Shown here piece after piece: positions 664 through 25,500 of a DNA stretch of 64,000 bases. The first letter of the stretch is position 1. Every line of letters begins with the position of its first letter. The notes beneath the pieces are model-generated. The model saw only the letters and a list, made by a program, of their open reading frames with translations, was not told the origin of the DNA and made no database searches. The translations under genes and the position numbers were made by a program. Source of the stretch: Mantamonas sphyraenae STR306 (Eukaryota; Protista; CRuMs); assembly GCA_026936335.1 (NCBI GenBank), contig JAPMXV010000008.1:1-64000 (forward strand). The letters are read 5' to 3'.

Positions 664-1096
664 ACCGAAACCAGAATGCGCATGTTAAAGGAGCGTGCAC
701 TGGCGCCCGTGGGCGTTCTGGATGCCTGAAAAAGGCGTCCATGCGCCGTTGGCATGGCAGAAACGGCGTCGGACCGCGTCTGGAAGCACAGAGAGCGGCG
801 GCGTCGCTTAAACTTAAACCCGGCTCCATATAAACCCTGTGTCCTGGATAACTTGAATCCGGTCTATGTCGTGTGAGTTGTGCTTTTGTCAGCTGGCGGT
901 GTGGCTGAGTCGGGTGGTGACGTGGGGCAGTGGGCAGTGGGTGGGAGTGGAAATGTCGCTGGTGAGTGGCCGTCGTCTTGCAACGCCGCGCAGTCAGCAC
1001 TGCCCATCCGCCTTCAACCAAAATATCACCAACACCCACAACACCCTCCACCAGTCCAACACAATCCACATACACTCCAGTATCACAGCCACCACC

Positions 1097-4000
1097 ATGG
1101 ACAACGACCACTCGAGCACTCCGAAGCAACAACACACACCCAACACCCACCCAGCGTGCGTTCTGCCTTCCACTCCGTTTTCTGACTGCCCACTTCTCCC
1201 GCTGCCATGCCTCCTCCATGCCTCTGATGCATCCCCGCACTCCTCCCCTGCATCTCCACTTCCCCATCACCCCCGTTGCTGCCTTCTCCGCTCTTCTTCG
1301 ATCCCCTCTCCCCTGTCACTGCCCTCCCCGTCGCCAGTTTCCCGGTCTGCCAATCTCCTCCGTTTTTCCCTCTTTGCTCGTTCCGGCCTCCCTTCACCCC
1401 CGCCTCTACCCTGACGGCGTCCATTCCGCCTTCCGCTCACCATTTCCACCTCGCCCTGCCCCTCCCCGTCCCCCCACAGCTACGCGTACATGGTCCCTCC
1501 CATGGCTGCCCAGCCGTTTCCGAACATGCTGCCCGTTTCAGGCGTACAAAACCCGTACCAGCACCCACAACCACCCATCATCTGGGTCCCTGTCACCACC
1601 CACTCCCAGCAGCACTACGCGTATCCACATCACGGCCATTCTTACTACGCCTACCCTCCTCCGCCGCCTCCTCAGCCGCGACAAACCGCCCAGGTGCACT
1701 TCGCTCAGCCTCCGTCGCACCCTCCGCCTGCTCAACCCACCATCAACCACAACCGCGTCCCCAAACGCATCAGCCCTGCGTTTGTCGGCATCACACGGAC
1801 CACATCCACCACCACATCGTCGTCCTCCTCCCACCAGGCCACACGGCAGACTGGAGACAGCGACGACGACGACGCAGACCAGGACACAGCCACACATGAC
1901 ACCGGCGACGTGGAGGACCTGATGTTCCTGAACTTCGGCCATCGTGAACCACGTTCAATCTCCAGCAACTCAGAGTGGATGACCAGCTCAGGGATGGAGG
2001 CGTACGAAAAAAGATGGAGAGGCAAACGACGCATCCCAGCAGCACGTGGACGGCGAGTTGGAATCTCAGGGCCCACTCACCTTTGCAGACACTGTTGATG
2101 CCATGGATGAGGAGTACATGCCGCAAGACGACAGCGACGATGACACAGACGACATGGAACAGGAGGACTTGGACGAATGGCAACCGAGACGCACAAGTCG
2201 AGGCCACAGACGAGGCAGAGACCACAACAGCCGACGTACTGTTTCACAACAGACGAAAGGCAGCGGACAGCGCAGGCGCAGGGTCACGGCTTGCAGTGGC
2301 ACCGAGACAGGAACGTCGAGCACACGGGCAACGAGGGCCAAGAACGGAGACAAAGGCGCACAGAAGAAAGCAAGCGTGAACATGACGAACAAGTTGCCAG
2401 ATGGTGTTGAGCGCAAAGGGTGGACAATTGGATACTGTGACGAGCGTAGCCGCAGCAACAAGAAGGAGCACACGGCACTGCTGAAGCACATGCACACTCT
2501 GGCCAACGAGCATCCCCTCGACCATATCTCAGACCTCATGACCCAGCAGGCGCGTGTTGTGGTCTGCCATGGCACCCTGTTGACGCTGGTCCGACAGATT
2601 CAGCTCGCTCTGGGCAACATTCCTCTCTCCCAGGGAGATATGGCCTTCTGCCTTACCCTTCTCGGCCGTGACATGGATCAACGCACGTGCAGAACTGCCA
2701 TCAACAACGCTGGTCTGGACATGGGTGTGACAAAGGCTGGGTTGAAGGTGTGCTGGCTGGAGGAGCCACACGACCACGGCGACCCCAACTACGCCCTCCT
2801 CCACCTGCTCATGGCAGAGTTGGACACTCTCGGCAACAGAACCCATCCCACCACCTGGAAGGAGCACGAGAAAACTCAGCTGTGGCTGCAGAAAGCACGA
2901 CGCCCTGCTGACAACGACAGCGACCCACACTGGACACAATGCGACTACGACCACCAACTCACCACCACCATGGTGGACAATTGGCACCCTGAGTCCGTGC
3001 GCAGTGGCTGGGCAACGCACAATCCCAACGACGAGCGTGGCAGCTGCACTGCGCGGGAGTTCCGGACGCTGCTGGCACACATGAAGGCACGTGCAGCCAA
3101 GCACCCTCGCCATCAGCACTCACACGAGCACCAGGCACTGCGTGAACTGGTCAAAAACGGCAGCATGAACTCCCTGGTGCGACACATCATCCTGGCGCTG
3201 GGCAACGTTGGCGTGCCGCCTGTCGACCTGGCCTTCTTTGTCCGCCTCCTCAGGCCACACATCACCTACCTGCAGGTCGTGACTGCCATCAGCGCCACCC
3301 TCACTCGTGGCGTCACCTCCCTTTCCCTCAAGATCACCTGGCTCGACAACCCCAAACCCAGCGACGCCACTCTGCACACCCTCCTCCACACCCTCATCGA
3401 CCGCATCACACCCCACATCACCACCCGTCCCATCACATGCGACGCCGTCAACACCCTCGACATCCCCGAGCTTGTTCTGCACGAGCCTACAGAGGAGGAG
3501 ATGCTGGCTGTGGAGGATGGACTGCCAGATGGCGTTATGCGCAGTGGCTGGACGTCCTGGCGCAAGAGCGAGCGCAGCCACAGCAACAAGAAGGAGCACA
3601 CGGCACTGCTGAACCACATGCACAACCTGGCCAACGAGCATCCCATCGACGACATCCCTGACCTCATGAGCCTGCAGGCGCGTGTTGTGATCTGCCATGG
3701 CACCCTGAACACGCTGGTCCGACAGATTCAGCTCGTTCTGGGCAACATTCCCCTCTCCCAGGGCGACATGGCCTTCTGCCTCACCCTCCTCGGCCGTGAA
3801 GTGGATCAACAGGGGTGCAGAAAATCCATCAGTAACGCTGGTCTGGCCATGGGTGTGACGAAGGCTGGGTCGAAGGTGTGCTGGCTGGAGGAACCACACG
3901 ACCACGGCGACCCCAACTACGCCCTCCTCCACCTGCTGATCACAGAGATGGACACTCTGGGTGCCAGGCCCCATCCCACCACCTGGAAGGAGCACAAGGA

Positions 4001-4667
4001 GACCCAGCTGTGGCTGCAGAAAGCACGACGCCCTGCTGACAACGACAGCGACCCACACTGGACACAATGCGACTACGACCACCAACTCACCACCACCATG
4101 GTGGACAATTGGCTCCCTGAGTCCGTGCGCAGCGGCTGGAACATTGCTAATCACGGCGACGAGCGTAGCAGCTGCACGGCGCGGGAGTTCCAGACGCTGC
4201 TGGCACACATGAAGACACGCGCAGCCAAGCACCCTCGCCATCAGCACACACACGAGCACCAGGCACTGCATGAGCTGATCAACACCGGCAATCTGAACTC
4301 CCTGGTGCGACACATCATCCTGGCGCTGGGCAACATTAGCGTGCCGCCTGTCGACCTGGCCTTCTGTGTCCGCCTCCTCAGGCCACGCCTCACCTACAAG
4401 CAGGTGGTTGGTGCCATCAGCGCCACCCTCACCCGCGGCGTCACCTCCCTCTCCCTCAAGATCGCCTGGCTCGACAACCCCCAACCCAGCGACGCCACAC
4501 TGCACACCCTCCTCCACACCCTCATCGACCGCATCACACCCCACATCACCACCCGTCCCACCACCGTCGATGCCGTCAACGCCTACCCCATCCCCTCGTT
4601 CACCCTGCCCAAGCGCAAAGACCCTTCCTCCTCCTCCTCCTCCTCCAAACGCCAACGCCTTGAATGA
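1097..4667 (+). CDS. Subtelomeric hypothetical nuclear protein: Pro-rich and acidic N-terminus, four tandem ~185-aa winged-helix-like modules (ABAB), C-terminal bipartite NLS-like motif
   Basis: ATG 1097 in gccaccaccATGG context. A phase-2 intron at 1156-1479 (GTGCGT...CACAG) joins in frame to ORF 1490-2098. An apparent +1 shift at the A6 run 2007-2012 leads into the 873-aa ORF. Internal duplication with a 1128-nt period. C-terminus KRKDP-(S)n-KRQRLE. The 2046-4667 part is secure; the 5' exons are inferred. Confidence 0.75.
2390..4590 (+). repeat. Intragenic direct repeat, 2 x 1128 bp (376 aa)
   Basis: agcaacaagaaggagcacacggcactgctgaa occurs at 2454 and 3582, with long near-identical stretches throughout. 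Confidence 0.97.
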
Positions 4668-4805
4668 ACCACCCATTCACATGCAAAGCCTCCAGCCCAC
4701 CCTCCCCTCCCCACCCAACCTTCCCACCTCCGATCAAGTCCATCTTCTTCGCCCCGCCGACAACAACGACAATCGGGTCGTTGCGCCTGCGTGCACAGAC
4801 CTACT

Positions 4806-7800
4806 ATGTCGATGCCTGCCGTCGTCAGTGTCAAAGTCGAGGACCGCTTCTTCGAGGTGTCGACGGTGGAGGGAATGACGGTGGGGCACATTCTGAAATC
4901 TGTGGCCCAAATGTACAAGGTGGAAACGGGCGAAGAGGTGGAATTGGTCAGGTTGGAATGGCATCAGATACTGGCCAACGACACCACAGTTGAGAAGTTG
5001 CAAAGTGCATCTCTCATCCAAGAAGGCGAGCCCTTTGATGCCATCAGTACGTTGTTCGGGCCTCGTTGGCCGAGTTTTCCTGATTGCGGTTTTCCTGATG
5101 ATTGCTGAGTTTCCTGATTGCCGAGTTTTCCTGATTGCTCGAATCCGCCCAGCCTCTCACACGCCATCATAACCCACCCCGAACACAGGAACTAGGCGAG
5201 GGGCGAACAACACACAAGATGGAGGTGGAGGTGAGTGTGTGGTGGTCGTGGGAGGGCGTCACGTCAGACACGTCAGCGGAATGGGCCGAATTGGCGGGAA
5301 GCGTGATCACTCACCCGTCACACCGGTTCTGATGCTCTCCACGCACACAGTGGGGTCTTCAACGGGTTCCACTGAGTCTCAGCAAGGGAAAGGAGCAGGT
5401 AGGTCGTGCGAGGGACCCAGTCATCCCTTGCTACGTAAACGAGCACCTTCCGCCCCTCTCACACGCCATGATGACCCACCCCGAACACAGAAACTGGGCG
5501 AGGGGCGAACAACACAAACGATGGAGAGAGAGATGAGTTGCTGAAAGGTGAGACGATGCTGGCAAGTGCCAAGACGGAGCTGGCGAGTGCTGAGACGAAG
5601 CTGGCGAGTGCTGAGACGAAGCTGGCGAGTGCTGAGACGGAGCTGAACAATGCGTACACTGCCCTGGAGGAGTCTCCAAATGAGCAGAGACTGCAAGGTC
5701 GTGTGAAACGTGCAGAGAATGCATGCACGAGGGCAGAAACGCTGGCGAACGCCGCAGCACAAGAAGTGCTGACCATTTCCGGGATCGTGAATGATCTGAG
5801 GAAGAGGGTACACAAGCACCAACTGGGAAACACTCCCCAGAGCCGCAGTTATCATGCCGCACCAGGTGAGTTCCATTTTCCCTGTGCCCAGCACTATCCC
5901 GGCCCTCTCACACGCCGCCACGACCCACCACGGCCACAGGAACTGAACGAGGAGCGAGCAACGTACAAGGGGATTGGGGAGGTGAGTGTGTGGTGGGTGT
6001 AGGAGGGTGTCACGTCAGCGAATTGGGCGGAATTGGCCCGGAAGCGTGATCACCCACACGCTCACACCGGTTCTGATGCACTCCACGCACACAGAAGGGC
6101 CATCAACACGTTTCACTGAAGGTGGCAATGGGAAACGACCAGGTAGGTCGTGCGTGGGACCCACTCATCCAGCACGCGTCAGCATCCTTTGCTGGTGCAG
6201 TCCCCGGCCCACTCACACGCCACTACCACTCACCACGGCTACAGAAACTGGGCAAGGAGCGAGTAACGCACAAGAGAAATGGGGAGGTGAGTGTGTGGCG
6301 GTCGTGGGAGGGTGTCACGCCAGGCACGTCATCGCAGGAGCGCTCACACCGGCCCTGCGTCTTCTTGCTGATTCCACATTCCACATGAACAGAGCGCACA
6401 GTACCGACCACGTTCGTGGACATGAAACGCATGCTGGAGGAACTGGGAATGGAATTGCGTGATGATTTTGTTCGCCCATGGGCAGGGACTCTCGGACTGC
6501 TGGAATCGCCTACCAAGGAGTGGATTGGGCGGGATGACTACGAGAGGCAGTTCCGCCACTTCCTGAGCATGAACAAGAATGACCTGCGGGAACCGCGGAT
6601 GGGTGTGTTTTCTGCGGTCACTGTGCCTGGATCGGGGAAAACGCGACTTCTGCTTGAGCTTCCGTCGGTGCTTGAGACTGTGCTGAAGAAGTCCGTGCTT
6701 GTGTTCCACGTGTCGTACAACTGCGGAAACAGTGCCACAACCGAAAGCAACCGATCCATAGATGAGCTGGAGACGATTTTTGCCCTGCGAATGCTCATGG
6801 GCTGGACAACCACCAAGGTGCTCACGAGTTCACTTGCGAACAAGGTGCTGCAGCAGTACCGGATCTGCATTGAAGATGTCGTCACCGTGGGTTTGGAGAA
6901 ACTAGGTGTCGAGGACGCGTGGGTGCTGGTGACGATTGACGAGAGCCAGGATTTGCGCAAGACGAAAGTTGGACAGGAAAAGGAACATGCACTGAAGATC
7001 ATCACGGACAAGCTTTCGGGCGTCCACCAAGTATTGAACTACAGGCTTGTTTTTGCAGTCGCTGGCTTGGTGCATGCTGCCAAGCAGCTGGCTGTGAAAT
7101 CAAGCGGAGGAGGGGATTTCCCTTTCCACATGAAGTGGTTCACTGGTGCCATGTTCCAGCAGTTGGCCACAGCTCTCAGCATTGACATCGATTTGGATAA
7201 GTGCAACCGCCTGTCCGTCATGCTTGGTGGGTCTCCGCTGGCAATGATTCGATTTTGCAATCGGGCAAAGGAGAACAACGCCGAGTTCAAGGAAGCTCTG
7301 GAACGTGATCAGCATGATGACCTCCGGAGATTGGCGCAAGATGCCATCAGAAGTCTCGCCAGGAAGTGGCACTCATCCTTCGACGAAGACAACTCAAACA
7401 AACTGCTTTCCGGGGAGCTGTTCAACCTGCCCCTGAATGAGCTGGAGAAAGAGCACCCAGATGCTGAAAACAATGGGCTTGTCACCAAGCGAGGTGGCTG
7501 TTTCAGTGTGGACGGGACCTTGGTGGCGTTGACGACCGACTGGACACGCACTTGGCACATGGACGCTGTTGTGCTCCGTGACGGGCCCGGGTTTGAAGAA
7601 TTTTGTGCCAAGTTTGTGGCCCTCAAGCTGTACCTGGGTCAGTACCGGTGCAATGAGAACGGGACAATGCCGTACTGGAAAATTTGGAATAGCGGGGCAA
7701 GCGTGCCACTCAGAACGGCTGATTTTCAAATCAGAACGAATCTGGGTGGCGATTACCTCATCCCGGTGGCGATGAAGCACCGATTCCCTCGGGGCAGCGA

Positions 7801-8581
7801 TTATGACACGAAGCAAATCGAGGTCGACAAGATGGACGCCGAGGTCGACGATATTGACATGAAAGCCAGTCTGAAAAAGATGAAAGAAGGTGAAACAAGG
7901 TATGTCAAAGATGCGTTCAAATCTACACAGCCGCAAGTCAATCGTGTGTACATCAACGGAAGGGGTGCGCCCTTTGCAGATGTTTTCACGTTTTTTCAAG
8001 TTGCTGGAGACCAGGACCATCTGCTGATGGAGTGTATCCAGTGCAAGCACTACGCACAGAGCACTTCATTGAATGAGCTCCACTGTTGGGATGAGTTTCT
8101 CAAGGTGGACTCGGCCAGGGAGCAGATTGCGCAGCTTGGACGTCGCATGGGGGCAACGCAGATCAGCGTTGTTCTGGGCATTGTGACGACAACCGGGAAA
8201 CACCAAGCACTCTCGTTTGGAGAGAGGCTGAAAATGGCGATGATGGATGCTGTGATGGCTCTGAACACAGAACCCCGACACAAACCACTCGTGGCCAACA
8301 TGGGGATGAAGCATCGGGATCTGCAGAAAGAGTTGGCGGAGTGGCAGCACACGGTGGTGGTGCAGGGGGGAGTGACAGTCAAGATGTGCGGTCTGTTTGT
8401 GGTCGGGTACGAGCAGTTGAGGGGATTCTTTGGTGACAATGCGTTGGGACCTCTGTCCAACATCGAGTTTCCGGTGACAGGGAACGATGAGCATTCCGAT
8501 GTTGGGTCATCTGCCAGTTTCCGGGGGGCACCCTCGCGTGAAGAATATGATGAGGAGGTGGTGGTGGTGGAGGTTGAATGA
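4806..8581 (+). CDS. Crinkler/CR-type effector: Ubl header, micro-exon linker, coiled coil, P-loop NTPase and REase-fold nuclease. Inferred exons 4806-5046, 5189-5230, 5351-5398, 5491-5865, 5940-5981, 6095-6142, 6245-6286, 6393-8581
   Basis: Ubl-like pattern VSVKVEDRFFEV...MTVGHILKSVA...ILANDTTV. Walker A VPGSGKT and Walker B VLVTIDESQ. REase-like FEEF...NGRGAPFADVF...IQCKHY. All seven introns are GT-AG and phase 1, and the spliced product is one open frame. Confidence 0.8.
5072..5138. repeat. Minisatellite, ~16-bp unit (GAGTTTTCCTGATTGC), 4 copies, in intron 1 of the CR effector
   Basis: Direct reading: tttcctgat recurs four times. Confidence 0.85.
5150..6352 (+). repeat. ~305-bp exon/intron module repeated in tandem (2 full and 2 partial copies)
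   Basis: ctcacacgcc..c..gacccacc...cag at 5156, 5458, 5906 and 6212. gaagcgtgatcac...cacaccggttctgatgc.ctccacgcacacag at ~5298 and ~6041. caggtaggtcgtgcg at 5396 and 6140. Confidence 0.92.
5560..5645 (+). repeat. 21-nt coding tandem repeat, 4 copies, encoding heptads LASA(E/K)T(K/E)
   Basis: ctggcgagtgctgagacgaag repeated, with translation LASAKTE-LASAETK-LASAETK-LASAETE. Confidence 0.95.
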
Positions 8582-8622
8582 AATGGGGACAATTTGTTCA
8601 GCTGATGCAAGGGTGCTGCCCT

Positions 8623-9080
8623 TGTGCAGCCATGCACCCTCAACATCAGCACACACACACGAGCACGATGCACTGCGAAAGCTGATCAACAACGGTAACC
8701 TGCACTCCCTGGTGCGCCACATCATCCTGGCGCTGGGCAACGTTGGCGTGCCGCCTGTCGACCTGGCGTTCTTTGCCCGCCTCCTCAGACAACACCTCAC
8801 CTACAAGCAGGTGCAAGGTACCATCAAGAACACCCTCACCCGCGGCGTCACCTCCCTCTCCCTCAAGATCGCCTGGCTCGACAACCCCAAACCCAGCGAC
8901 GCCACACTGCACACCCTCCTCCACACCCTCATCGACCGCATCACACCCCACATCACCACCCGCCCCACCACCTCCGCACTCGTCAACGCCTACCCCATCC
9001 CCTCCTTCACCCTCCCCAAGCGCAAAGACCCTTCCTCCTCCTCCTCCTCCTCCTCCAAACGCCAACGCCTCGAATGAACC
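8623..9080 (+). pseudogene. 5'-truncated extra copy of the C-terminal B module and NLS of the 1097-4667 gene
   Basis: Near-identical to ~4220-4670, including the stop context gaatgaacc. It has no own N-terminus, and a +2 (CA) expansion at ~8650-8660 breaks frame with the upstream homologous codons. Confidence 0.85.
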
Positions 9081-10518: not shown

Positions 10519-13500
10519 TCACGCGTGCACTGCTCCCTCCCTCACGACAAACTCCTCTACCTGCCCGCTCCATCGCTCCTGCCCGTCCACGTGTCCCGCG
10601 CCAATCACAACTGTGGCCTTGCCCACGCTTGCCTTCTCCGAAAACGCCACGGGCCACGCGCCCACCTGCTTGCCGTCCACCTCCACGCTCATCACACCCT
10701 TGCTTCCTTCACTTGGCACATACACCACGCGAAGCGTGTACTCCGCTTGCTTCTTCAGCGTCACGCCCGTCATCACGTACTGGCCCTTTGTACGCTGGCC
10801 GCACTGCATGCCGACCGCCATGTGGCCTCGATAGAAGCCCATGAACGGCCCTCCACAGCCACCCAGCGTAAACAGCGACTCCCATCCAGCAACGCCAAAC
10901 GCTCGCCCTGTCTTGACCTTCACGTCCACCGTAAAGCCGTACTCCAGCACCAGGCCCTTCATCGACACTGCGTCGCGAGCTGCCTTGAACAGACCACTCG
11001 TGTCCAGCCCCTTGGCAAGTGCAAATCCGTTGCCGTGCGTCTTCAACTGCACGCCGGGCCACACCGATGCACCGCTTGCCGCGTTGGTTTCCTCCTTTCC
11101 TCCCTTCCATGCCACTGCACTGCCCACGTCGTGACCATTCACTTGCGCCCATGCCTTCTGCGCCACAGTCGAACCAGCGATACGAAGCTGCACGCGCGCC
11201 CCTTCACCAGGCGCACGTCCTTCACAGCCGCTCCGTTCACCAACACCTGGCCACCTGCGTTCACACGCACGCCCAACGCGCCCTTTGACACAATGGTCTC
11301 GGCACCCGACCATTTCAGGTCGCTTTCCACCGTTTCGCCGTACGCACTCGCACGTGCGTCAGCCACCAGCACGGGTGTGTGCACTCCCGACCAAAGCGAC
11401 GCCTTGTTCACATGCACGCCCGCGCTGCCCACTGTGACGGCACTCAGCGCAGCCTTGCCGGTCAGCTCCACATCGCTCACGCCGCGTCGCACACCGTTCA
11501 CAAAAACGTGTGCCTTGCCACCTGCAAACACCACGCTCAGCTCGTAGCGACTCTTGGTGCGCAGCTGCACATCCGTCGTTGCCACCTTGCCGCACGCAAT
11601 GCCCACAACCACTGCGCCATCGTGCATCGCCACCATCGCTCCACCACATCCATACGCCACAAGGTTCGCCTTGCCCTTCACAGACGCACCCGTGGTCACG
11701 TCCACACTCACAGTCACGCCCTGCTTGCGCACCGCATCCCACTCCACAGTATCCACGTTGGCTCCGCCCAGCTCGGCCCCAGGCCCTTCCGCAGGCACGC
11801 GCAGTCCGACCTTGGCTTCCTTTGGCGCCTTGCCCTTGCAGCGCAGTGCCTCTCGGCCGTCCATGTACACAACCACGTCTCCGCCTGCGCCATACAGCGC
11901 ATCCACACGCACGGGCGCAGCAGCCACAAGTTGCAGCTGTCCAGCCTTGCCGTTGCATCCAGGCACAGGCCAGCTCTTCTCGCCACGCAAGCCGGTCCAC
12001 GTCGCCGTGGCTCCGCGCTCTCCAGCGTCGCCTGCCTGCTCACGTACGTAAGACACGCCTGCACGCCACGTGGCGCTGTGCACCTGCACCGCCTCGTTCG
12101 CTCCGCTGGCCTTGACACGCGCTCTCGTTGCGTCCAGCGTCTGCGCGAGGTCAAGCACGCTGCTGTGTGCACCGTCCATCTCGAGCACAACCTTGCTCTG
12201 GCTCACACTCAGCGACAGCGTCACACGAGTGTTGGCCAGCACGGGTGCACGCGACGCAATTGTCTTGCCTGCAACACGCACCGCCCACATGCCCTCCTTC
12301 GACACAGTCAAGTCCACAGGCGACTCTTTCATCAGCGACCACGTCTTGGACGCCGCCGCGATGTCACGCACAGTCACATCCACCTCCAGCTCGCTACCAA
12401 AGCGAGCATCCACCAGACTGTCCAGCGTGCGCACCGCCTCCAACTTCTGGTTGGGCCACACGGGCGACAGCACCACACCGCGCGCGTATGTCAACGAGTA
12501 CACATGCCCGTGGAACAGCTCACGGCCGTCCAAGTGCCCTGCACCCACAACTGCGTCGCGGCCCTTGTGCTGACGCACCCACGCGCCAAAGTCCTTCTCC
12601 ACACGACGGTACACTTCGTCGCCATTGACAAGCACCAGCAGCAGACCCGTGCGAGCGTACCACACCGCACGAAGCTCGGCGCGAGTGCCCGGACGCATCG
12701 TCACGCCCGTCGACACCATGCGCTTGCACTGCACGCCAAAGCGCACGTCCATGTTGTACACGCCAAACATGGGGCTGTTGCAATCGAAGCTGCCCACACT
12801 CTGCCACCTGTGGCTGCGCATCGGCATGCGCACGTCCGCCACAACCGTGAATCCTTCGTCGGAGCCGCACACCTCCGCCACACTCAGCGCCGTGCGCCTC
12901 TTCTCCATTACCGCGGCTGTCTTGGCTCCCTTCAAGTGCACAAAGCGTTCGCCTCCGCCAGTCACACCTGCACTCAGCTGCACCTGTGACACACCGGCCA
13001 CCTTGGCTGCATCCAGCCATCCAGAAGACGGCGCTGCAAACTCCAGCTTCTGCGGCGTCTTGGTCACATCCACACCGGACATGCGCATGGTCAGCGTGTT
13101 GCCAAACAACACTGCTTCCACCACGGCCTCTACACCCTTGGGGACCACCAGATGTGTTGCCACGCGGCCTCCGCCGCGCACTCCCACCGACAGGCCCGGC
13201 GCCTCCGTAGGTCCACTCTCCATGTACGGCATTCCTTCCGAACCCACAATGCGCACCGCTTCACCGCCACGCACGCGTGCACGCAGCACAAAGCCCACCG
13301 GGCGGGCACCAAAACGCTCCAGCAGCGACTCTGCCCTGCTTCCGGGCACCAGTGCACGCTGCACCTCAAACGCACGCACGTACGGGTACATGCGCAGCAT
13401 GTGAACCACACCGTGCCACGTCTCGCGCCCGTTTGCATATCCTGCACCCGCCACAACGCGCACGTGTTTGCGCGAGTCAAACTTCACGGCGCGGCACGCC

Positions 13501-16500
13501 ACAAACTTGCCCTGCAAGCGGAAGCAGTACTTGCCTGCGTAGAAACTGACCTGCAGGTGGTAGCGACCACCATATTGCAGCACGGTGCCCGTGTGCGGCG
13601 TCTGTCGCGAATCGCACTGCACACCCACACGAAGCTCGTGCCGCCCACCTCCCATCGTACGCATACCAATCAGAGGCGAGCCGCACTCGCCGCCAAGGAA
13701 CACTTCCCACGCCTCGCTGCCGTCACCCACAGTCACATACGCCTCCACGCTGAATCCGTACGTTGCCGACGCAAGCGCGTGCATGTCCACCTTCTTTGCC
13801 CACTCTCGGATCGCGCCGGCCTTGCTGTTGCTCTCCATCAGCGCATACTCTGTGTGCTCCTTCACCGTCTCTGCGCGCTCGCCTCCGCTCACGCGCACCC
13901 ACGTCACCTTGCCGTCCAGCGAGTGGCCAATCTGCACATCACCGCTGCTGCTTGCGCTCCCTGCTGCAAGGGTGCCCTTCACCACGCCAACCAGCTGCTC
14001 GTTCACAAACACACGCGTGGCGCCGTCGCGGTACGAAAACACCATGCGGTAGCGCGCAAGCGGCTGCAGCACAAAGCCCAGGCTCACTCTGCTTTCCTTC
14101 TTGCAGCTCAGGCCCATGACCACCTCCCCTTCCTTCTCCACGCTCACGTACAGTCCGCCGCATCCACGCGAGTACTGCAGCAGGTATCCCGTCTTGCGCG
14201 TTACCTGCTCGCCCGTGCGCACGTCCATGCTTACAGACATGCCCAGTTTGCTCGCCAGCAGCGTCTTGGTGGACACCCATCCGTCCGTCTTGCCACCTGT
14301 CGCCGAACGCACGACACCGCCGTCGCTGCGCACAGTGCCCTCGTGCAGTGTCCACTCGCTCCACGACACTCGCAAAGGCACGACCAGGCCGCTGCTCACA
14401 TACGCACGCAACACCGCCTTGCCCGTGCTCACCTGCGCATCCTCCAGCGGACTCTTGACACCAACAGACACGCTCTCTCGCAGTTCGTCGTTCACGTACA
14501 CGGCCGCCGTTTGCTGCGCCCCATCCACCAACACATCCAACCACGCTCGTCCTGTCATCACGGGCTCCCGTGTGCACGACTCGCTCTCACGCGCGCCGCG
14601 GACGCACACGTGTCCATGCGACGACGCGCGCACACGCAGACCCTTGCTCTCCACAAACGTACCCTCGCCGCTCACTTCGGCAGACACTGTGAAGCGTGCG
14701 CCAACGCCTGTCACACGCGTTGAGCGTGTCCCAGACGTGCTCAGCTCCTTCTGCACGTGCGCTTCCATCGTCTCCACGCCCGAACGCACAGCCAACGACT
14801 GAATGCGTCCTCGGAACGCGTCGCTTCCCACGTACACGCGCGCCAGCGTACCAGGCACAAGCGCACGCAGATTCAGCGGAGATCCGTGCACGTGGCGAGC
14901 GTTTGCAAACACATGCACACGTGCCGTCGGTTTCGACAGCACCACCTTCAGCGTCACCGTCTCGCCATCCACCTTCCAGCGCATCGCCTCCGATCCAACC
15001 ATCAACTGGCCGTCCTGCAGATACACACGCGGCAATACGCCAGACGGGTCTTCCAGCAGCATCTGGCGACCCTTGGTCACTCCGCTCTCTGCATGCATGC
15101 CCGCAAGCTGCATCTCGATCGTTGCTCCCTCTGGCGCAAATCGCGCTCCCAGGCGCACGTTGCGATACTCCACGCGCTCACGGGCTCCAATCGGTTCCGT
15201 CACGCGCAGCGCCGTCAGCGGAGGCAGAGGGATCTGTTCGCCACTGCCCAGCGACGCCGCAAAGATGTCCCCGCCACGGAATCGCTCTTCGCCCTTCACA
15301 TTGCTTCCAAAGGCAATCTTGTCCAGGCCCGCGCTGGCCTCGTTCAGTCCTTGCAGCTGGATCGACCCGCCAAGCTGTGCGCCGTTCACAAAAACCCGCG
15401 CCACGTCGTCCTTGACCACCACATCCAGCTCAAACGCAATGATGTTTGGCAGGTGGGCATGCAGCACCTCTGGCGCACTCTTGCACTGTGTAAAGACACG
15501 CAGCGTGTGCGCGTAGATGCCCACCGCCAGGCCCTTGCACGGCAGAGACATCAGCGTGTTCCACCCACCGTCTGATGACTTGACAAAGTGGGCGTGGAAC
15601 GTCACCGCCCCGTTGCCCGCCTTGCGCATCGACTCCCACGACGGCATCGCCATCACAGCGTGCTCTCCGTGGCTCAGCTTCTTGCCCAGTGTCACGCCCG
15701 TCCACGCAGGCGCCCTTCGCACGCCTGCAAACAGCTCCACTTGTGTAGCTGCACTCTTCACCTCCACCTTGCCCAGCTGGAAAGTGTGTGGCGTCGCAAC
15801 CACACGCTTCACCGCCACGTTGTCCACCGTGCGCATCTTGCGCCCGTTCAGGAACGATGTCACGGTCGCATGCTTCTTGCTCTGCGGTACCTTTACGTGC
15901 ACTGCCAGCGATTCCTGGACGCCCGCGCGTGCATACACACCCAAGCGCACCAGATCGCTCTCGGCGCCGCACTGCAGGCCAAGCACGTACTCGTTGTCCA
16001 ACACGCCCAGCTGCACCGCGCCACACTCTTCGCCACGCACCACGCTCGCAATGCCCTCCTTCGCGTCCGCCACGACGGTCGCCTCCATGCTCCACCCGCC
16101 CAATGAGCGCGTCAAACGCGCCGTATCGGTTACCACGCTTGCCCCGGACGCCAAAACGCTGTTCTCCACAGTCGTGCTCGACCCTTCTTGAATCTCGACG
16201 CTGTGCAGCGTGCCCAAGAAGCGCTCGCTGTTGCCTTCCAGGCTAGACCCAAGCACCACACGGTCGGCCTGCGTCATGGACGACATCGACAAGCCCTTGG
16301 GCGTCGCAAACGTGTTGCCTGCTCGGCGGTGGTCCACGTACACGGTCCATTCGTTGGCCGCGGCATCGTACGTCAGCGTCATGCGCGTGTTCTTCTTCGG
16401 GTGCACTCCAGTCGCGTGTACCGCACCGCACTGCGTACCCACAACAAGCTCGCCTCGTCGCAGCGCGACCATCAGCGACTTGCACGGGCCGGCAAGCAGC

Positions 16501-19500
16501 ACTTGCCACGCAGGCTGTCCGCCGTCACGCAAACTCAGCGTAAACGTCATCCCAAAGCCAACCTTGCTGCGCAGGATGGCACGCAGCGCATCCCACGCCT
16601 TGCCCTGCAGCGTCTGCACGCCCACTGGGCTCCACGCAAGGCGACGCGATTCCTTGGGCACAATCATGCCCCTGCTCACGCGTCCTTCCTCGACCACACC
16701 TGAAAACTGGCCACCCACAGTGACCGTCTCGCCCGCATGGTGCGCCGCACTGCCCTCGGGCAGCGTGCCCTCGTCCATCAGCCATCCGTTGACAAACCAG
16801 TACACGCGCTGTCCGCCATGCACCACATCCACCTTGGCCACCGTCTTTGCCGCCAGCTTGCCCGCCATGCCGTGCATCACGTTGCCCACCTCCTTCTCCT
16901 TGCACGCCACGCTCACGTACGGCTTGCCACGCACAAATCCGCCCACCAGCGAGCCACATGCACCGCCAAACAGCTTTTCCTTTGCCTTTTCCTCGTTGCC
17001 CATGCGCACAACAAACGTGTACGTAAGGCCCTTGCGCAGCTTGCCGTGCAAAGCCACGCGCAACGACTTGCCTGCGGCCACCCTTGGCACATCCACGTGT
17101 GATTTCTGTTTGCGCACGTACCTGTACCGCGCCTCCATGTGCACCCTGTCCACCTGACCGCTAAACCTGTGCGCTCCGCTGTCCGCGCCCGCGCCGAGCA
17201 GCAGCGTTGTGCCACGCCAGCCACGCACATCAACATGCACGCGCTGCACACGTTCGCTGTTTCCGTCCAACTCCACGTCCACTGCGCCGCCAAAGCCGCG
17301 CAGTGTCACCGTGTGTGTCGTGTCCGGCAGCAGGCGAAGGTGCGGCACCTCGCTCGGTGCACCTCCGGCACACCCATTGCCCACAAGCACCCGGTTGCCA
17401 CGCAGTGCCACAAGCACACCCATGGCGCATCCGGGCACGCCCACAATCGTCTGCACTGCGTCTCCTTTGCATGCGCCGCTCTCGATGCGCACAGACATCG
17501 TCCAGCCGTACACAGAGGACACGGCCGTTTCCAATGCACTCTTCACCTTCAGGTTGCGATACATGCCCGCCTTCTTCAGTGCCTTGCGGACAGTCCATTT
17601 CTCTTTCTGAGGCACGTGTGCGCGCAACGCACCGCCGAGCCACAGCGAGTGGATGGTGCCTCCAAATGCTTGCGTGTCGCTCCCACTGGTGCGTCGCACG
17701 CCGCCCACCACAATGGACTTGTCGCATGCCCACGGCTTTGGCGAAAACCCGCTTGTCTTGCGCCACAACACGCGGCCGTTCAGAGCCAGCGTCACCTGTC
17801 CGCCAAATGCGTCGACTTGCACAAGCACGCGCTTGCCAGCAGGCACAGGCACGCCCTCAAACAGCGCCGCGTCCGACTTGCCGTCGCTCACACGCCACAC
17901 GCCGTTCAACAACAAAAAGTGCGGAAACACGCAACCCGGCCCGCTCAGAAGAAACTGCTCGCCATGCAACTTGCTCGGCACAGTCACGTCTGCAACAATC
18001 GACCATCCCTGCAGTGTGTTCAGGCCGCGCAACAGCAGCGCCACGTTGTTCTGCACATGCCTGTGTTTCAGCGCGCTGCCCTTCTTCACGAACCAAGCTC
18101 CGCGTGCATTGCCCGGCTCAAGCGCACGTGCAAACACGGCAAACTCTTCCACGTCGCCCTGGAACAGCGCGCCCTTCAGGTACGCCTCTCCTCCGCCGAT
18201 TGTGAAGCGCGACGTGTCGCCAAGGCGCAGGTTGAGCACCGTAGTGCCCACCCGTTGCCTGTTCACGTACGCCGTCACGTGTCCTCCGTAATACACAAGG
18301 TCCACAGACACGCGCGCGCCGTGCAAAGACAGCAACTTGCCCATGTCCATGCCCTTCAGCGCACGCACCGTCCCGCATGTGCTGCCAAACTCCATCACGC
18401 CTCTACGCATCTGCACAAGCAAGTTGCCGCACTTTTCGGCGGCGACAACAATCATCGCCTGCTCCTTTGTGTAGCTCGCTTTGTCCTTCGGCAGCGTCAG
18501 GGTCATTTGCACCGTCATGCCATACACGCTTGTCGCCAGCGAGTGCGTGTCCACCTGCGGCGTGCGCGTAGGCGATCCGGACTTGACGCGCTCGTCCAGC
18601 TTCCATGCACTGCCCAGCGGCGGTGAAAACACTCCACGCCACACCTGGCCGCTGTGTACCTGCGACGACACCGACGGCCTGTACGTACTGGTGACAAACT
18701 TCTCCGACAGCACAGACGTGTATCGCAGCTGGTCGTTCACATACACGTACAGCGTGTGGTCCTTGTACACCAGTGTCACAAGTACACGCTGGTCCCATGC
18801 CACACGCGCCCCACTGCTCTTCATCTGCTTGCACGCAACGCCGGCTTCCCACACGCCCTCGGCATTCACGCCCAATGCAAGCGTGCCACACGGTCCTCCC
18901 AACACAGACACGGCGCTGCCCACCATGCCACGTGGCGTCACGTCCACCTCTGCGGTGAAGCCGTACTCTGTGCCCACGTACTTGCTCATCTGCACCGAAC
19001 CCATGCCTGCCTTCAGCACAACCATCGTGTCCGCAGGGCTGTGCTTCCCGTCTGCAAAGTGCACATCCAGCACCTTGCCCGACCACACATGTGCGCCCTG
19101 CGTGTTTGATGCACCCACTACGAGCGTGCCTGTGCGCGCCAGTCCGAGCGTCGACACGGAGAAGCGCGCTTCGGAACGTCCGTCCAGGAACAGCTCGGCC
19201 ACGCCGTTTTGATACACAATCGTCACACGGTACACCGTCGACCCGCGCACATCCACGCCCGACGAAACCATGTCCGAGCACGTCAGTCCAAACGCAAGCG
19301 TGCCCTGCTCGATGCCCATCTGAGGCATGCCGCAGCTCGTGCCGCTAAACACCATCTGCGTGCCCTTGGACACATCGTGGCTGAAGCCCGTGCGCACACG
19401 CACCGTCACCGTGAATCCTTCCACGCCGCCAAAGTACGTGTCCACATCCAGTGCCTTTGCCACGCGGTGGAACTTGCCCGTCGCCACGCTCGTTCCCAAC

Positions 19501-22500
19501 TGCCATGGCACGCAAACGCTCACCTGACACGGTTCACGCTTCTCCGTCTCACCACACGCACGTCCGCCGTGTGCGGCCTCCACCAAAATGCGACGTGTGC
19601 TGATCAGCTCGCCCTTGCCGCAGCTGCGCGAGCACTTTTGCGTCGCCCACTCGCCCATCTTGCAATCTACCGGACACGGCTTCTTGTTGCACACCTCGTT
19701 GCGTACAAGCGCACCGCAGCCTTTGCCGGCGCCCACAGCAGGCACAATCACCTTGCGCACCATGCGCTGCACGCCACCGCCGCACGCTTTGTTGCACTCG
19801 CCTACGGGCTTCCAATGGCTCGCACGGCAGTCTTGCTTGTGCGGCGGATGCACACCGGTGCTCACGCGCACCTGCTCCACCCACGGGTGCATCACCTCGG
19901 TCGCATCGGCACGCAGACGCGCCCATCCGTCCCCAAGGAACACGGCCGCTTGCTTGTGCCCACCCACGTACACCTGCGCCATCCCGTGGGCGTAGGTCAA
20001 CACAATCGTCTTGCGTTGACTCAGTGCACGCACGCCGTTTTCGATGCGCACGCCGGGGCGCCTGCAACGCTTCGTCAGCTCCAATGCGTTGCCCACCACA
20101 TGCACGTCCAACGTGTCGCACGTCGCGCCGTGCATCAGTGTGTGCTTTCCGGCACTCACCGACTTGAGTGTCATGTGCAGCGTGTATCCAGACGGGCTGC
20201 TGGCAAGGGTGTCCAGAGCCACGTGCGTGCGACGCACCCAATCCGTAACACGCTGCTCCGCGTTGTACTCCCACTGGCGCACCGGCACCTCCATGCCCTG
20301 CCTCACACACACGCGTCGCAGCACACCGCCCCAAGGCGACGCTCCTCCGCCCTCTGATCCAAAGATGACGTCCCGCGCATCGCGAGGCAGCTCCAGCAGC
20401 TTTGTGCCCTTCACCCACGCACCCGCCACGCGTCCGCCGTCCACAAACACGGCCATGCGCTGAGCTGCACGGTCAAACACAAACGACAATGTGTACGTGC
20501 GTCGTGCCTGCAGCGCCACGCCCAGATCCTGGATCGCGCCGCAATTGATGCCGGCCACAAGGCGGCCTTCGCGCGTGCCCATAAACACCTGGCCACACCC
20601 TCCGCTCACCACCGTCTGCCATCCACGCATCGTGTTGCCCGTTTTCACAGACGCCGTGATTGTGAAGCCACGCTGGTCGTGCCACAGACCCGTCGAGTCC
20701 ACCTCGTTCCATGTTTTGCGCTGCCCGCACAGTGGGCGCATGGGCGCATGCACTCCTGTTTGGATGTCCGACGAAACCACGCCGCCCTTCCACCTGCCCT
20801 GGCCTCGCTCGTTGCCTGCTCCCACCACCAGATAGTGCGAGTTGTACATCAGCTTGCCAAGGTCCCCAACCTCCTTCTCTCCCACCGGTTCGCCGTCCAC
20901 AAACACACGCAGTGTGCCGCTGGCGTACGTCAAAACAATGTGGGCTCGCGTGTGTGCGCTCAGGCGCGCACGTGTCACAAGGCGCACGCCACGGCAGCGA
21001 ACATCCACGTACAGCTGCATGGCCGCCGTCGTGTACACTTCCAGCGTTCCGCAGTCGCCTCCAAACACAGACTGTGAATCACCTCGTGCTTCGGCAACAT
21101 CCACGAGCGCAGACAAGGTGAACCCACGCGCGCCAAATCCGCGCCAAGGGTACCCTGTCCGCGTCACGCGCACGTACCCACCGCGCTTCAGCGCCTTGGC
21201 CACCAACGGCCAATGGGCATGTGGCACGGCGGCGCCCAACATCAAACGCGCATGAGACACGCTACCGTGCCACTTCCACGACGTGCCCGATGTCCCCGCG
21301 GATCCAAGGAACGGTCGCGACACAGCCGTGCTGGCCGAGCGCTGCCGCAGCGCAGCCACAGCCACGCGTGCACCGTCCACAAACAGCACCGCCTTGGTCT
21401 GGGTCACCTGAAGAGTCAGTTGCACACGCTTGCCCCACGGCACCGCGTACGCAAACATCGTCGCCGACGAGTGGCCCGGCACGTCATACCCGAGTTTGCC
21501 GTGGCGCACATAAAAGTGCGGCACCCCGCGCCCGCCAGCCAGGATCGCCTGGCCCGACAGTGTGCGTCCGGAGAACTGCACTTCCGCCTCAAACGTAAAG
21601 CCTTCGCTCGTGTACGCCGACCAGTCGATCGCAGTGCGCACGTGCAAAGGACGACCCGGACGCGCAGACTCGCCGCGTGGCGTCAGCACTTGCGACACGC
21701 CACCCAAACTCCCGCACGCGGGCTCCACGTCCATCAGGTCGTGCAGAGCACCGCGTGTCAGCTCCTGGCCCGCATACACCTGCAAGCCAGCCACCACGCC
21801 ACGTCCAGAGCCACCCATCACCCACGGCGAAAAGCAACCCAAGGCCTGAGCACCAATGTTGGTCTTGGCGCTGCACACCTCCTTGCCGTTCACGTAACCG
21901 CGTGTACCACGAGGTCCAATCACAACCGCAAGGTGGTGGAACTTCTTTGGCGACAGATGGCCCGTCGAGCATCCCGGTGCAAGCTGCACCTCGCTCCCGC
22001 GCTGGTGGATGTGCACTCCACAGCGCGCCACGAGCGTGCCCTTGTCCACACGTGCCGTCGGTCTGAACCACAGCGCCACGGTGCCCGTGCTCCCTGTCGC
22101 GGCCGTCGTCCACTTGTTCCCCAGCTTTCGGCCCTCGTGGGCACTCGCACAACGGCGCATCAGCGTCGTCGGACTCGCCAGCACGGTCATCTCCAGCACA
22201 GACTCTGCGTCACCTCCGTTCTTGGCCGCCTCCGCCACATACTTGCCTCCGGCCACGCGCACGTTTCGTGCACCGTGGCCCAGACTCAGACGCACGCTCG
22301 ATGGAGACACAACCTCCGCCTCCATCACGCTCGCCTCGCTCGGCGCACCTCCCGTTGCTGCCATCTCCCCCTTGGCCCCTGCACGCACCACGCCGCCTGT
22401 CTTTTCGTCCACAAGCACAAACCGCTTCGACGAATGGCCCACCATCCGCACACGCAGGGCACGCGCTCCGGCAAGTGCCGTCTTTGCAAGCAGACTGCGC

Positions 22501-25500
22501 AGTCGCACGCGCTGTCCGTGACGCAAATCCACAGTGCGCCTGTGCACGCGCAGGGTGTTGGCAGGGTGCAAATGGTCCCTACCGTCGCCCATCATCACGC
22601 CTGCATGGTTGTTTTGCAGCCAGCGCCCTGTGCTCGTCGAGCGCAGGCCAACGTGCTGCACGCCTACGCGTCGCACCTCCACCACAGTGCCCTGTGCGCC
22701 ACACTCGCTCTCGCTCGTGCGCAGTTCCAGACCCTTGTGCAACGCCAGCACCTTGCCGCTCGCAGCCACCAGGCACACCTGGTTCTCCGCCGCTTTGTGC
22801 ACACGCACACGTACCATCGACTGAGGCTCCATCCTGCCCTCCGCATCCTGCTTCACCACCCCGCTCTCGCCCACCACGAAAAAGAGGCCTCCGTGCGACA
22901 GCGCCACTTCATCTCCGTCGAAAAGGGCGTTGAACCAACGCTTGCCTGCCTGGATGCACTTTGCAGCCTCGCCCGTCTCCGCATGGCACACCGCGCCGCG
23001 CTCGCAGTCGCTGCTGCGCATGCACTCGCTTCCCGTGCGGAATCCGGCCTTCGGACGGCACACCTTGGCTTTGCGCGCCTCGCTGCGCCACACGCAACGT
23101 GCGCTTTCGCACATGGCGTTGTTTGTGCACGGGCGCATGTCTGCCTTGGCGCAGCGGTACTCGCCCTTGCTGTGGGGCGACGGCAAGCACCTCGTGCCAC
23201 GCACGCAATGGTGACCCTGTTGCGGGTGGCAGCTGCTCCCTGCCGCAAATCCTCCTTCCGGCAAGCACACGCGGCTCTTCGACGTGGCTCGGTTCGACGC
23301 ACACACAAAGCCCAGACAATCAAGGTCCTTGGAGCAGCTGTCGTATGCCTCCTTGCGCTTGCGGAACATCGACCTGTCACCGCGCACCGCCTTCATCACG
23401 TCGTTGAAGATCAGATGCGCCACGTGGAACACATCCTTCGCGAGGTGTCGCAGACGCACACGGAAAATCTGTTGGTACTGCCACAGACGGTCGCCCATCG
23501 AGATGTCCACGCCTGTGCGGAAGCCCACCGCAGTGTTTGCAATCCCTTCCAGCACTCCCTCGAATTCAAACTTGCGCAGAGCGATCACAGGCAGCGCAAA
23601 CGTCTTCTTCAGCGTCTCCTCAATCTTGCGCTGCAGGCCGTCGATGATCTTCCGCTGCGCAAGAACAGCCGCGCCCGTCGCCATCTTGTGTGCCGTGCGC
23701 GCCGCTTCCTCTGCCTTCCGCTGCGCACGCGCCAGGAATCGGTTCTTGGCGCTTTCCAGATCCCGCACGCGTGCACGCACCCAGTTGCGGAACTCCCTCC
23801 ACAGCGGACCACCCAGTCGCTTCAGCACCTTGATGATCGCTCCACCCACACGTCGTGCCTTCTTGTAGATCTCGCGCGGGTCCAGGGTCTCCTTCACCTT
23901 GCGCACCACCTTGCGCACAGTGCGCCTCACCCATCGCCCAACGGCTCCCCATCGCTCTCCTTCCTCGTCCGCAACCTCCAACAGCCACTTGTTGCGTGTC
24001 TCTTCGTCCACACTCACCAGACGTGCAAGCGCCTCCTTCTGCTCATCGCTCACTGCTCCGGCTCGCTTGGTCTGTCCAAACGCGTTCAGATGCTTCAGCA
24101 CAGCCAGCCGCTCGCCAGAGTCGGCCATCAGCTCCACGTGCTGCGTGTACTTGGCACGGCGCATCGCACGCGTGTGCTTCAGCGCCTCATCAAATGCATC
24201 CCGCATCGCAGGCAGGTGGTAGTGCGTCGCCGCGTGCATCTCTGCCTCGGCGCGGCTCGGGCCCGTGCCTGTTTCTTCGACATCCTCACTCTCTTCGCCC
24301 GTACACGCCCCGCCTGCGTACTCGCGCACCTTGCAAGCCATGCGTGCGTCACGTGCGGTCGCAGCGTATGCACTGTCCAGTCCCAACCCAAGCTCCTTCG
24401 CATACGATACCTCGTCCATCACAGGCGACTCCTCTTCATCCTCCAAGATGCCTCCCACGTCAAACTTCTTGATGAACGCCTTGACGCGCTGGTACGCACG
24501 CTCCGCCTCCTCCTTCAGTCGCCTCACCGTCGCAAGCGTCGCACGGTACACGCGGTCCAGGTTGCGCTTGATCATCTCAATCGTGTGGCGTGCGTTGCTC
24601 AGCATGCGCTTCGCCACTGCCACTGCCTTTTTGATTGCATCCACAAACTTCTGCAGCATGCCTCCGATCGACTGCTGCAGCTTGTCGCGTCCGGCCGTTG
24701 TCACAGCCGCGCGTGCTCGCAAGCTCTTCATCTTCGCCAACTGGCCCTTGCTTTCCACCTGAACGCGAGCCTGCAGCAGGTCAAAGTCAAACACACGCCC
24801 CTCCAGGTCGAACGACACGCCGCTGTCGTCCACAGACAGATGCACGCTTCCACGTACACCCAGCACATCTGCGCGACCGTTCACAAGCAGCGACCCTGCG
24901 CTTCCGTCTCCAGGGCCCACAATCTTCAGCTGCGGGCCTCCGAAGCGGCTGTTGCCTGCCAGGTAAAAGATGCCCTTCTTACCCAGCGCACTCAGCTCGC
25001 CGTGCAGCATCGGCGGACGCACGCCCACCGTCAGAGCGACCTTTTGTCCAAACAGATTCGCTTCCACCATGGCTCGCTTCTCGTTCATGTCGATGCGTGC
25101 CTTGGCGCCTGTCATCAGCATGCTCGCGGCACGCACACGCAGTTCCACGTGGCCGCGCACAAAGAATTGCTTCTTGTCCAGGCGGCCCTCCACTTGGCCT
25201 CGGATGTCCAGGCCAAGTCGCTCGTAGTCAAACAGGTGCACCTGGCCCTCGATGTGCAGTCCCTCCACGTTGCTCGCAAGCACAGATCCGTACACCACCA
25301 CGCGCTTGCCCATCGTCACTCGCAGCAACCCTTGTGTGCGCAGCAGCACCGGCTTGTCCTTCACCAGACGCACCTTGGACGCACCCTCTGCAAGCGCCTC
25401 CAGGTGGAACGGCGCCTTTGGGTTGCCCAATCGTCCGTACAGACGGAATCCGGCTCCAGCCTCGAACCCCTTGGTTGCCATCGCTCCAATGCCCAGCTGA

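Follow-up and report, generated by a model that had tools for sequence, protein, structure and literature searches.

A telomere-proximal gene family of Mantamonas sphyraenae with tandem helical modules that diversify at a few sites

The first 64,000 nucleotides of contig JAPMXV010000008.1 (C8) in the Mantamonas sphyraenae STR306 assembly GCA_026936335.1 were analysed, and this whole stretch is called the window here. Close to its telomere lies a gene for two tandem units of 376 amino acids, each built of an A and a B module, which are followed by a tail resembling a nuclear localisation signal (NLS). The gene belongs to a family of about 160 genes at almost every chromosome end of M. sphyraenae. 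This family is real, protein-coding and lineage-restricted, and its modules share a helical scaffold that carries three small, homologous spots under positive selection. Mantamonas is placed in CRuMs, a deep-branching and little-investigated lineage of eukaryotes, and the genome paper contains neither the word 'subtelomere' nor a mention of the family (PMC10492846).

The longest open reading frame (ORF) near the chromosome end runs from 2046 to 4667 on the forward strand and encodes 873 amino acids. Together with the part that precedes it, the gene is composed as follows:

1490-2008, forward strand: family start codon (MVPPMAAQ...) and the Pro/Gln/Tyr/His-rich, then acidic, N-terminal part, in the frame of the intact paralogues
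2003-2008, forward strand: A6 run with a one-nucleotide insertion and a +1 frame shift; A5 in the closest paralogue, GAAGAAGAC in the family consensus
2009-2393, forward strand: remaining disordered N-terminal region with an acidic DDSDDD block and then an Arg-rich basic block, in the frame of ORF 2046-4667
2394-2945, forward strand: module A1 (acidic, helical), hot spots 2424-2441, 2577-2582 and 2673-2708
2946-3521, forward strand: module B1 (basic, helical), hot spots 3012-3029, 3162-3170 and 3258-3302
3522-4073, forward strand: module A2, hot spots 3552-3569, 3705-3710 and 3801-3836
4074-4667, forward strand: module B2, NLS-like tail (KRK, poly-Ser, KRQRLE) and stop codon, hot spots 4140-4157, 4290-4298 and 4386-4430

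The copy in the window is a frame-broken or mis-assembled family member. Because the closest paralogue and the family consensus differ from it in the A-run, the insertion is private to this copy, and it is either a true lesion or a PacBio homopolymer error; the assembly was made from PacBio continuous long reads (CLR) with FALCON and polished with Racon and Pilon (PMC10492846). The frame 3' of the run is fully open. Over 4 kb, the gene is 96.6% identical in nucleotides to an intact right-end copy, that of contig C20, and about 90% identical to others, and its hot-site signatures are the same as those of the C20 copy. The two frame pieces were searched separately. A frameshift common to the window copy and the copy on contig C19 was considered and rejected, as the break in the latter lies at another place. 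An initial reading of the letters alone (the sequence-only reading) had described an acidic and Pro-rich N-terminus, which is present, but its Pro-rich part lies in the other frame, behind the insertion. The NLS-like tail from the same reading is kept in all 19 intact paralogues that were sampled.

The two units form a direct repeat with a spacing of 1128 nucleotides (unit 1, 2394-3521; unit 2, 3522-4649). Residues 117-492 and 493-868 of the ORF, 376 each, align without gaps at 78.5% amino acid and 85.5% nucleotide identity, so that their former description as 'near-identical' is too strong. The repeat itself is confirmed. Each unit consists of two homologous modules, as proposed from the sequence (BLASTP, 39% identity over 152 amino acids, E 3e-20). 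Common to A and B are the motifs GW, ER, LL-HM, HP, LVR-I-LALGN, D-AF, LL, AI, GVT, LK-WL and P. The variable strings quoted in the sequence-only reading were all located, those following GW as the first and those of a predicted helix as the third hot spot of each module listed above, and a third quoted helix variant stems from a 3' gene fragment at 8487-9077. Differences between the two units are clustered as claimed, with 23 of 60 core mismatches falling into 48 of 354 columns (hypergeometric p 5e-8). Beyond the two patches first described, every module has one more, small hot spot, immediately N-terminal to the LVRxI helix (columns 64-65 and 264-265 of the unit).

Evidence for diversification was obtained from an alignment of 57 distinct units from 30 loci; the family statistics as a whole cover 30+5 loci and a genome-wide motif census. 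Column entropy is concentrated in few columns. In a parsimony (SLAC-like) count on a FastTree topology, the ratio of nonsynonymous to synonymous changes (dN/dS) was 0.32-0.36 for the 296 codons of the scaffold, about 0.9 for the 40 codons of the inter-module linkers and 1.2-1.95 for the 48 codons of the variable patches. After Bonferroni correction, 15 codons showed 2.5-5.9 times the neutral number of nonsynonymous changes. These sites lie directly behind the invariant GW (column 12 of A and columns 211-218 of B), at the one or two residues that precede the LVRxI helix (column 65 of A and columns 264-265 of B) and in the predicted helix (columns 100, 104 and 107 of A and columns 302, 303 and 307 of B), with one more in the C-terminal linker (column 355). 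Helix columns 103 and 108 of A were raised without reaching significance, and column 299 of B was raised as well. With a spacing of i, i+3/4 and i+7/8, the hot helix sites fall on one helix face, and the buried Ala-Ile pair of this helix is invariant. Positive selection is therefore found at homologous positions of A and B and on one face of the helix that had been called a recognition helix, which bears out the earlier picture of a fixed scaffold with focal variability.

The contrast persisted in a cross-validation, in which the 20 most variable columns were chosen in half of the loci and dN/dS was estimated by maximum likelihood in the other half as omega (GY+F1X4, iqtree2). Omega was 3.20 for the hot columns and 0.37 for the remaining ones. 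When omega was fixed at 1 for the hot columns in a likelihood-ratio test, 18 log-likelihood units were lost (2dlnL = 36). The paralogues recombine, the topology was fixed and the two halves share ancestry, and the contrast is still large. About 15-20 codons per unit, corresponding to about 7-10 residues per module, are under positive selection on a scaffold under purifying selection (omega about 0.35). Mean identity among the 57 units is 89% in the scaffold and 22% at the hot sites, and 51 distinct signatures occur among them, for A and B alike. Nearly every module is unique because the residues of the hot spots have been driven apart by positive selection, and such site-specific selection on a conserved scaffold is characteristic of a subtelomeric diversifying family.

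The assembly that was covered comprises 25,061,354 bases in 78 contigs, the longest being C29 at 751,365 bp, with about 59% GC and TTAGGG ends. A 26-nucleotide motif at the family start codon occurs 162 times in it (81 forward and 81 reverse) and its reversed control not once. Querying the genome with a unit-sized protein gave 415 candidates, among them at least 109 intact units without internal stops. Forward copies typically lie 0.8-1 kb from the contig starts and reverse copies at the opposite contig ends. Where a second or third tandem copy exists, it is located about 3.9 kb deeper than the one before (contig C3, at 821 and 4698; contig C23, at 857, 4700 and 8575). Three ends with reverse copies were inspected. 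Each of them leads into a TTAGGG array, and the distance between its final repeat and the ATG is 640-670 bp. All genes are oriented away from the telomere, to the chromosome interior. The paralogues are thus concentrated at chromosome ends and adjoin telomere arrays, as in a subtelomeric multigene family, and the C8-left and C20-right copies, with their high identity and common signatures, indicate exchange between non-homologous ends. About 490 bp of the upstream region next to the telomere recur in the spacer that separates tandem copies, and this spacer contains no telomere repeats. Homology to most paralogues stops at the stop codon (4667), and therefore the repeated element is essentially a promoter plus an ORF. 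With the count from the motif census and a period of 3.9 kb, simple arithmetic assigns about 2% of the genome to this one orphan gene.

A convergent, internal cluster of family copies was also seen at about 75-104 kb of contig C29 (loci L034, L035 and L025), far from any telomere. It has open frames of up to 3224 amino acids and some partial units, and no interstitial telomere repeats were present in the 20 kb of it that were inspected. Candidate origins are a mis-assembly, an old chromosome end or a site of expansion.

Intact members have a continuous frame of 1053-1072 amino acids from the conserved ATG (MVPPMAAQ...) to the terminal KRQRLE, as found in 19 of about 29 sampled genes, with the following layout:

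Residues 1-110: 24% Pro, plus Gln, Tyr and His
Residues 111-235: Ser/Asp-rich, acidic
Residues 236-300: Arg-rich, basic
After residue 300: units in the order A-B-A-B
Tail: KRK, poly-Ser of varying length, KRQRLE

Most genes have two units, and three are present in the gene on contig C17. Among intact copies, the N-terminal region shows a per-column conservation of about 92%, and the tail matches the classical bipartite NLS pattern. Because of the NLS-like tail and the charged disordered regions, the product is expected to be intracellular and probably nuclear. About one third of the sampled copies carry frame breaks or early stops. In these copies (L006, L008/L033, L010, L012, L020, L022 and L023) the breaks lie mostly in the low-complexity N-terminal third and the module region is open; they are either young pseudogenes or products of PacBio homopolymer errors in multi-mapping repeats.

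These data also bear on whether a protein is encoded at all. A frame that is open by chance in repetitive, GC-rich DNA, or a family of dead pseudogenes, would fit the frame break in the window copy and the long spurious ORFs that GC-rich DNA gives in other frames. More than 100 units without stops, a scaffold omega of 0.35, the homology of A and B at the protein level and the intact state of most sampled genes, however, make this explanation hardly credible.

Another view is that of a selfish or structural subtelomeric element of 3.9 kb, maintained and multiplied by recombination between ends, with an ORF that serves the element itself or the maintenance or capping of telomeres instead of diversified recognition. 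Yeast Y' and fungal TLH (RecQ helicase) elements are telomere-adjacent tandem elements with one long ORF and are exchanged between ends. The Mantamonas element likewise abuts the telomere in one orientation, occurs in tandem copies at nearly every end, has a homology block of promoter plus ORF and looks broken in about a third of its copies. However, the ORFs of Y' and TLH are helicases, whereas no helicase, reverse transcriptase, Gag or other enzymatic domain was found in the Mantamonas element with Pfam, PADLOC, PHROGs and NCBIfam. In addition, its tandem copies have no telomere repeats between them, and its strong site-specific positive selection on a conserved scaffold is unexpected for a mere structural repeat. 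A selfish or structural role is therefore regarded as quite improbable. Two more specific candidates were rejected: a telomere-linked helicase element (Y'-Help1, TLH RecQ), as no helicase or AAA match was obtained in Pfam or NCBIfam, and a retrotransposon (HeT-A/TART-like) or Gag origin, as Pfam and a Foldseek search of BFVD were blank and homology ends at the stop codon.

The sequence-only reading could not assign the modules to any family, and the searches agree with this. In Pfam, nothing was above the cut-off for the window ORF, 114 modules and an intact paralogue of 1058 amino acids, and weak matches to Hemerythrin and Gp84 were insignificant. PADLOC, PHROGs and NCBIfam gave no relatives, nor did a word-index search of 5.8 billion clusters with the 873-residue ORF. 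An exhaustive hidden Markov model (HMM) search with a profile of 112 modules against 1.84 billion representatives found no credible relative. Its sole match, the ankyrin-like repeat protein P0001, was held to be spurious because only a 'TLLHILV' stretch was aligned, seven times. The best E value in a profile search of the PDB was 0.3, hence none was significant, and the ESM Atlas gave no relatives by features or by shape.

Structure was predicted with AlphaFold2 on an alignment of 112-114 rows of A and B modules, the same for both models. The best models reached a predicted local distance difference test (pLDDT) value of 70.0 for A and 71.8 for B, each with a predicted template modelling (pTM) score of 0.72. 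Both are helical, with two long helices, then helices at residues 62-73, 80-89/90 and 96-106, about 20 residues of low pLDDT and a final long helix. The three-helix block has a pLDDT of 76-90 in both models. Among the best 50 Foldseek rows, all of them weak, about 38 for A and about 25 for B were winged-helix domains aligned on residues ~58-125, including CRP/FNR, ORC/Cdc6, Rrf2, BlaI/MecI, ArgR, Fur, MarR, ArsR, GntR, H1, Stn1, CAF-1, Cdt1 and FOXN1. Three consecutive helices with winged-helix-like spacing are a likeness to winged helix-turn-helix proteins (for instance the CRP/FNR C-terminal domain 2zcw, the ORC/Cdc6 winged helix 7jgr_G, ArgR, Fur, MarR and BlaI/MecI), and the Gly-Val-Thr ... 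Leu-Lys-x-x-Trp-Leu stretch after the helices could form a hairpin. On the other side, no sequence or profile match to any helix-turn-helix (HTH) or winged-helix family was obtained in Pfam or the PDB profiles. A winged-helix core as proposed from the sequence is a candidate fold compatible with the models, in which the three helices lie where they had been predicted. None of the outcomes that had been named as contradicting it was seen, namely a predicted fold without an HTH, variation spread evenly across paralogues or a match to a known family that does not bind DNA, but no positive test was significant either.

Charge differs between the modules. B modules are strongly basic (isoelectric point (pI) 10.6, net charge +7.7; core pI 11.0, net +4.6), and the hot sites are rich in K, Q, R, N, H and S, which predominate in the B helix. 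The interpretation that is favoured, at somewhat less than an even chance, is a nuclear recognition repertoire in which the B modules, with their basic charge, use a winged-helix-like core to make contact with nucleic acid or chromatin. Each gene lies in a telomere-abutting element of 3.9 kb, would be transcribed from the telomere inwards and encodes the N-terminus, two or sometimes three A-B units and the NLS-like tail. The three hot spots (two residues past the invariant GW, directly in front of core helix 1 and in core helix 3) would form one ligand-binding surface. B modules might then bind in the manner of KRAB zinc-finger proteins (KZFP), PRDM9 or DUX4, with the A modules acting as their acidic partners, and the family would serve as a recognition repertoire whose diversity is renewed as chromosome ends recombine with each other.

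This interpretation is weakest where it names the class of ligand, and several findings weigh against it. A modules are mildly acidic (pI 6.3, net -4; core pI 6.3, net -0.6). At column 303, the hottest site of the B helix, 23 of the 57 units have Pro or Gly, and several hot sites of A sample Leu, Ile, Val and Phe. The putative wing (residues 108-127) has a pLDDT below 50, with no more than two beta bridges in the B model. Only the best of five models per module reaches a pLDDT of 70, the other four ranked models averaging 38-66, and both module models rest on one shallow alignment. Foldseek gave no significant match in PDB or BFVD. Recombination among paralogues can inflate site-wise counts, and the frame breaks or early stops in about a third of the sampled copies have to be considered as well.

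Since Pro, Gly and hydrophobic residues occur at hot sites, binding of proteins fits as well as reading of DNA. The variable helix face and loops might instead bind viral, transposon-encoded or other conflict partners, in an intracellular immune-like or decoy role comparable to that of nearby subtelomeric genes of the LRR-ankyrin and Crinkler types. The occurrence of all residue classes at the hot sites, L, I, V, F, P and G among them, the acidic A modules, the lack of an HTH family by sequence and of a significant fold match, and a CR-type nucleoside triphosphatase (NTPase) gene that adjoins the window copy would all agree with such a protein-recognition repertoire. It is nevertheless considered somewhat unlikely, as the B modules are strongly basic with mainly polar and basic residues at their hot helix sites, the tail is NLS-like, the weak fold matches are enriched for winged-helix domains and there is no known protein partner. 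A bolder form of the nucleic-acid reading, that the approximately 650 modules constitute a new diversified nucleic-acid-recognition code in an unseen or extremely diverged winged-helix fold, is unlikely. If it were true, specificity would be set by three hypervariable spots per module of 150 amino acids, and the code would be an independent eukaryotic invention, comparable to KZFP/PRDM9 or TALE arrays, that might counter mobile elements or mark chromosome ends.

Several known systems resemble the family in part. In Candida albicans, the telomere-associated ORF family TLO encodes Med2 subunits of Mediator (PMC5908203, PMC10721199, PMC4335505). Both are lineage-expanded families of nuclear regulatory proteins (in Mantamonas by prediction) and among the most telomere-proximal genes on most chromosome arms. 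TLO, however, has 10-15 copies compared with about 160 in Mantamonas and has neither internal module repeats nor a reported focal hypervariable helix face, and in contrast to TLO, no Med2 domain was matched by Pfam in the window ORF or the intact paralogue of 1058 amino acids. Human D4Z4/DUX4 consists of subtelomeric tandem units of about 3.3 kb with an intronless ORF and two tandem helix-turn-helix modules (PMC12376486, PMC3616921). The Mantamonas units of 3.9 kb, with one ORF each of tandem module pairs, are similar to it. DUX4 differs by its recognisable conserved homeodomains, whereas the Mantamonas modules match no homeodomain or HTH profile, and D4Z4 is present at two chromosome ends only, with copies that are not diversified. 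KZFP and PRDM9 show positive selection on few helix positions of tandem modules (PMC6719617, PMC5363842, PMC5705219). With them the family shares the conserved scaffold, selected positions at i, i+3/4 and i+7 and large, clustered, fast-evolving genes. They are made of C2H2 fingers in 28-residue modules and carry KRAB or SET domains; the Mantamonas proteins lack these, have modules of about 150-190 amino acids and are at most putative DNA-binding proteins. As the defining domains are absent, the family is no member of TLO, DUX4 or KZFP/PRDM9. From subtelomeric families of the var or VSG type it differs by its NLS-like tail and charged disordered regions.

If DNA binding proves to be true, the family would represent a novel system of modular recognition and offer a new model of how subtelomeres create binding diversity in the nucleus instead of on the cell surface. 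If protein binding is true, it would point to an intracellular conflict system not yet known. Either reading offers a clear, testable set of residues on one helix face and two loops.

Around the gene, the window contains these further features of the chromosome end:

1-183: telomere array (CCCTAA)n of about 31 copies, at the left end of C8
179-287: four 26-bp telomere-associated repeats
861-1489, forward strand: CT-rich conserved upstream region of the family element, ending in a pyrimidine tract and CAG before the ATG
8487-9077, forward strand: 3' fragment of a second family copy in tandem, with the latter half of a B module and the tail

At 179-860, the 26-bp repeats and further nested telomere-associated repeats, with AGCTTAGA cores at 189, 215, 241, 460 and 652, insert about 650 bp between telomere and family element at this end. 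At the right ends of contigs C10, C16 and C57, the three other ends compared, the element begins about 50 bp past the last telomere repeat, and the 26-bp repeats were not found there. These repeats, once put forward as a possible DNA target, are for this reason unlikely to be a general one. The upstream region at 861-1489 shares about 89% identity with its telomere-adjacent counterparts at other ends and with the spacer that separates tandem copies. At its end, a conserved polypyrimidine tract (1460-1489, at the same place in paralogues) ends in CCCCACAG, 11 nucleotides upstream of the family ATG. This resembles a splice acceptor and may point to an intron in the 5' untranslated region or to trans-splicing.

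Further inside, direct repeats of about 450 bp (4220-4667 and 8626-9080, about 90% identical) represent the 3' end of the family gene and the truncated second copy. They flank a Ubl-like ORF (4791-5108), micro-repeat DNA and a gene for a P-loop NTPase of 721 amino acids (6416-8581), which was labelled Crinkler-type on first reading of the sequence. Judging from this layout, most of the second tandem family copy looks to have been replaced by the NTPase gene region. Directly inside the subtelomere follows an ORF of 5102 amino acids on the reverse strand (11139-26447), in which LamG-like repeats were noted on first reading. A helicase ORF of 1565 amino acids on the forward strand (43991-48688) has AAA_11/AAA_12 domains and a weak match to the N-terminus of Aquarius, and its product is probably the intron-binding protein Aquarius.

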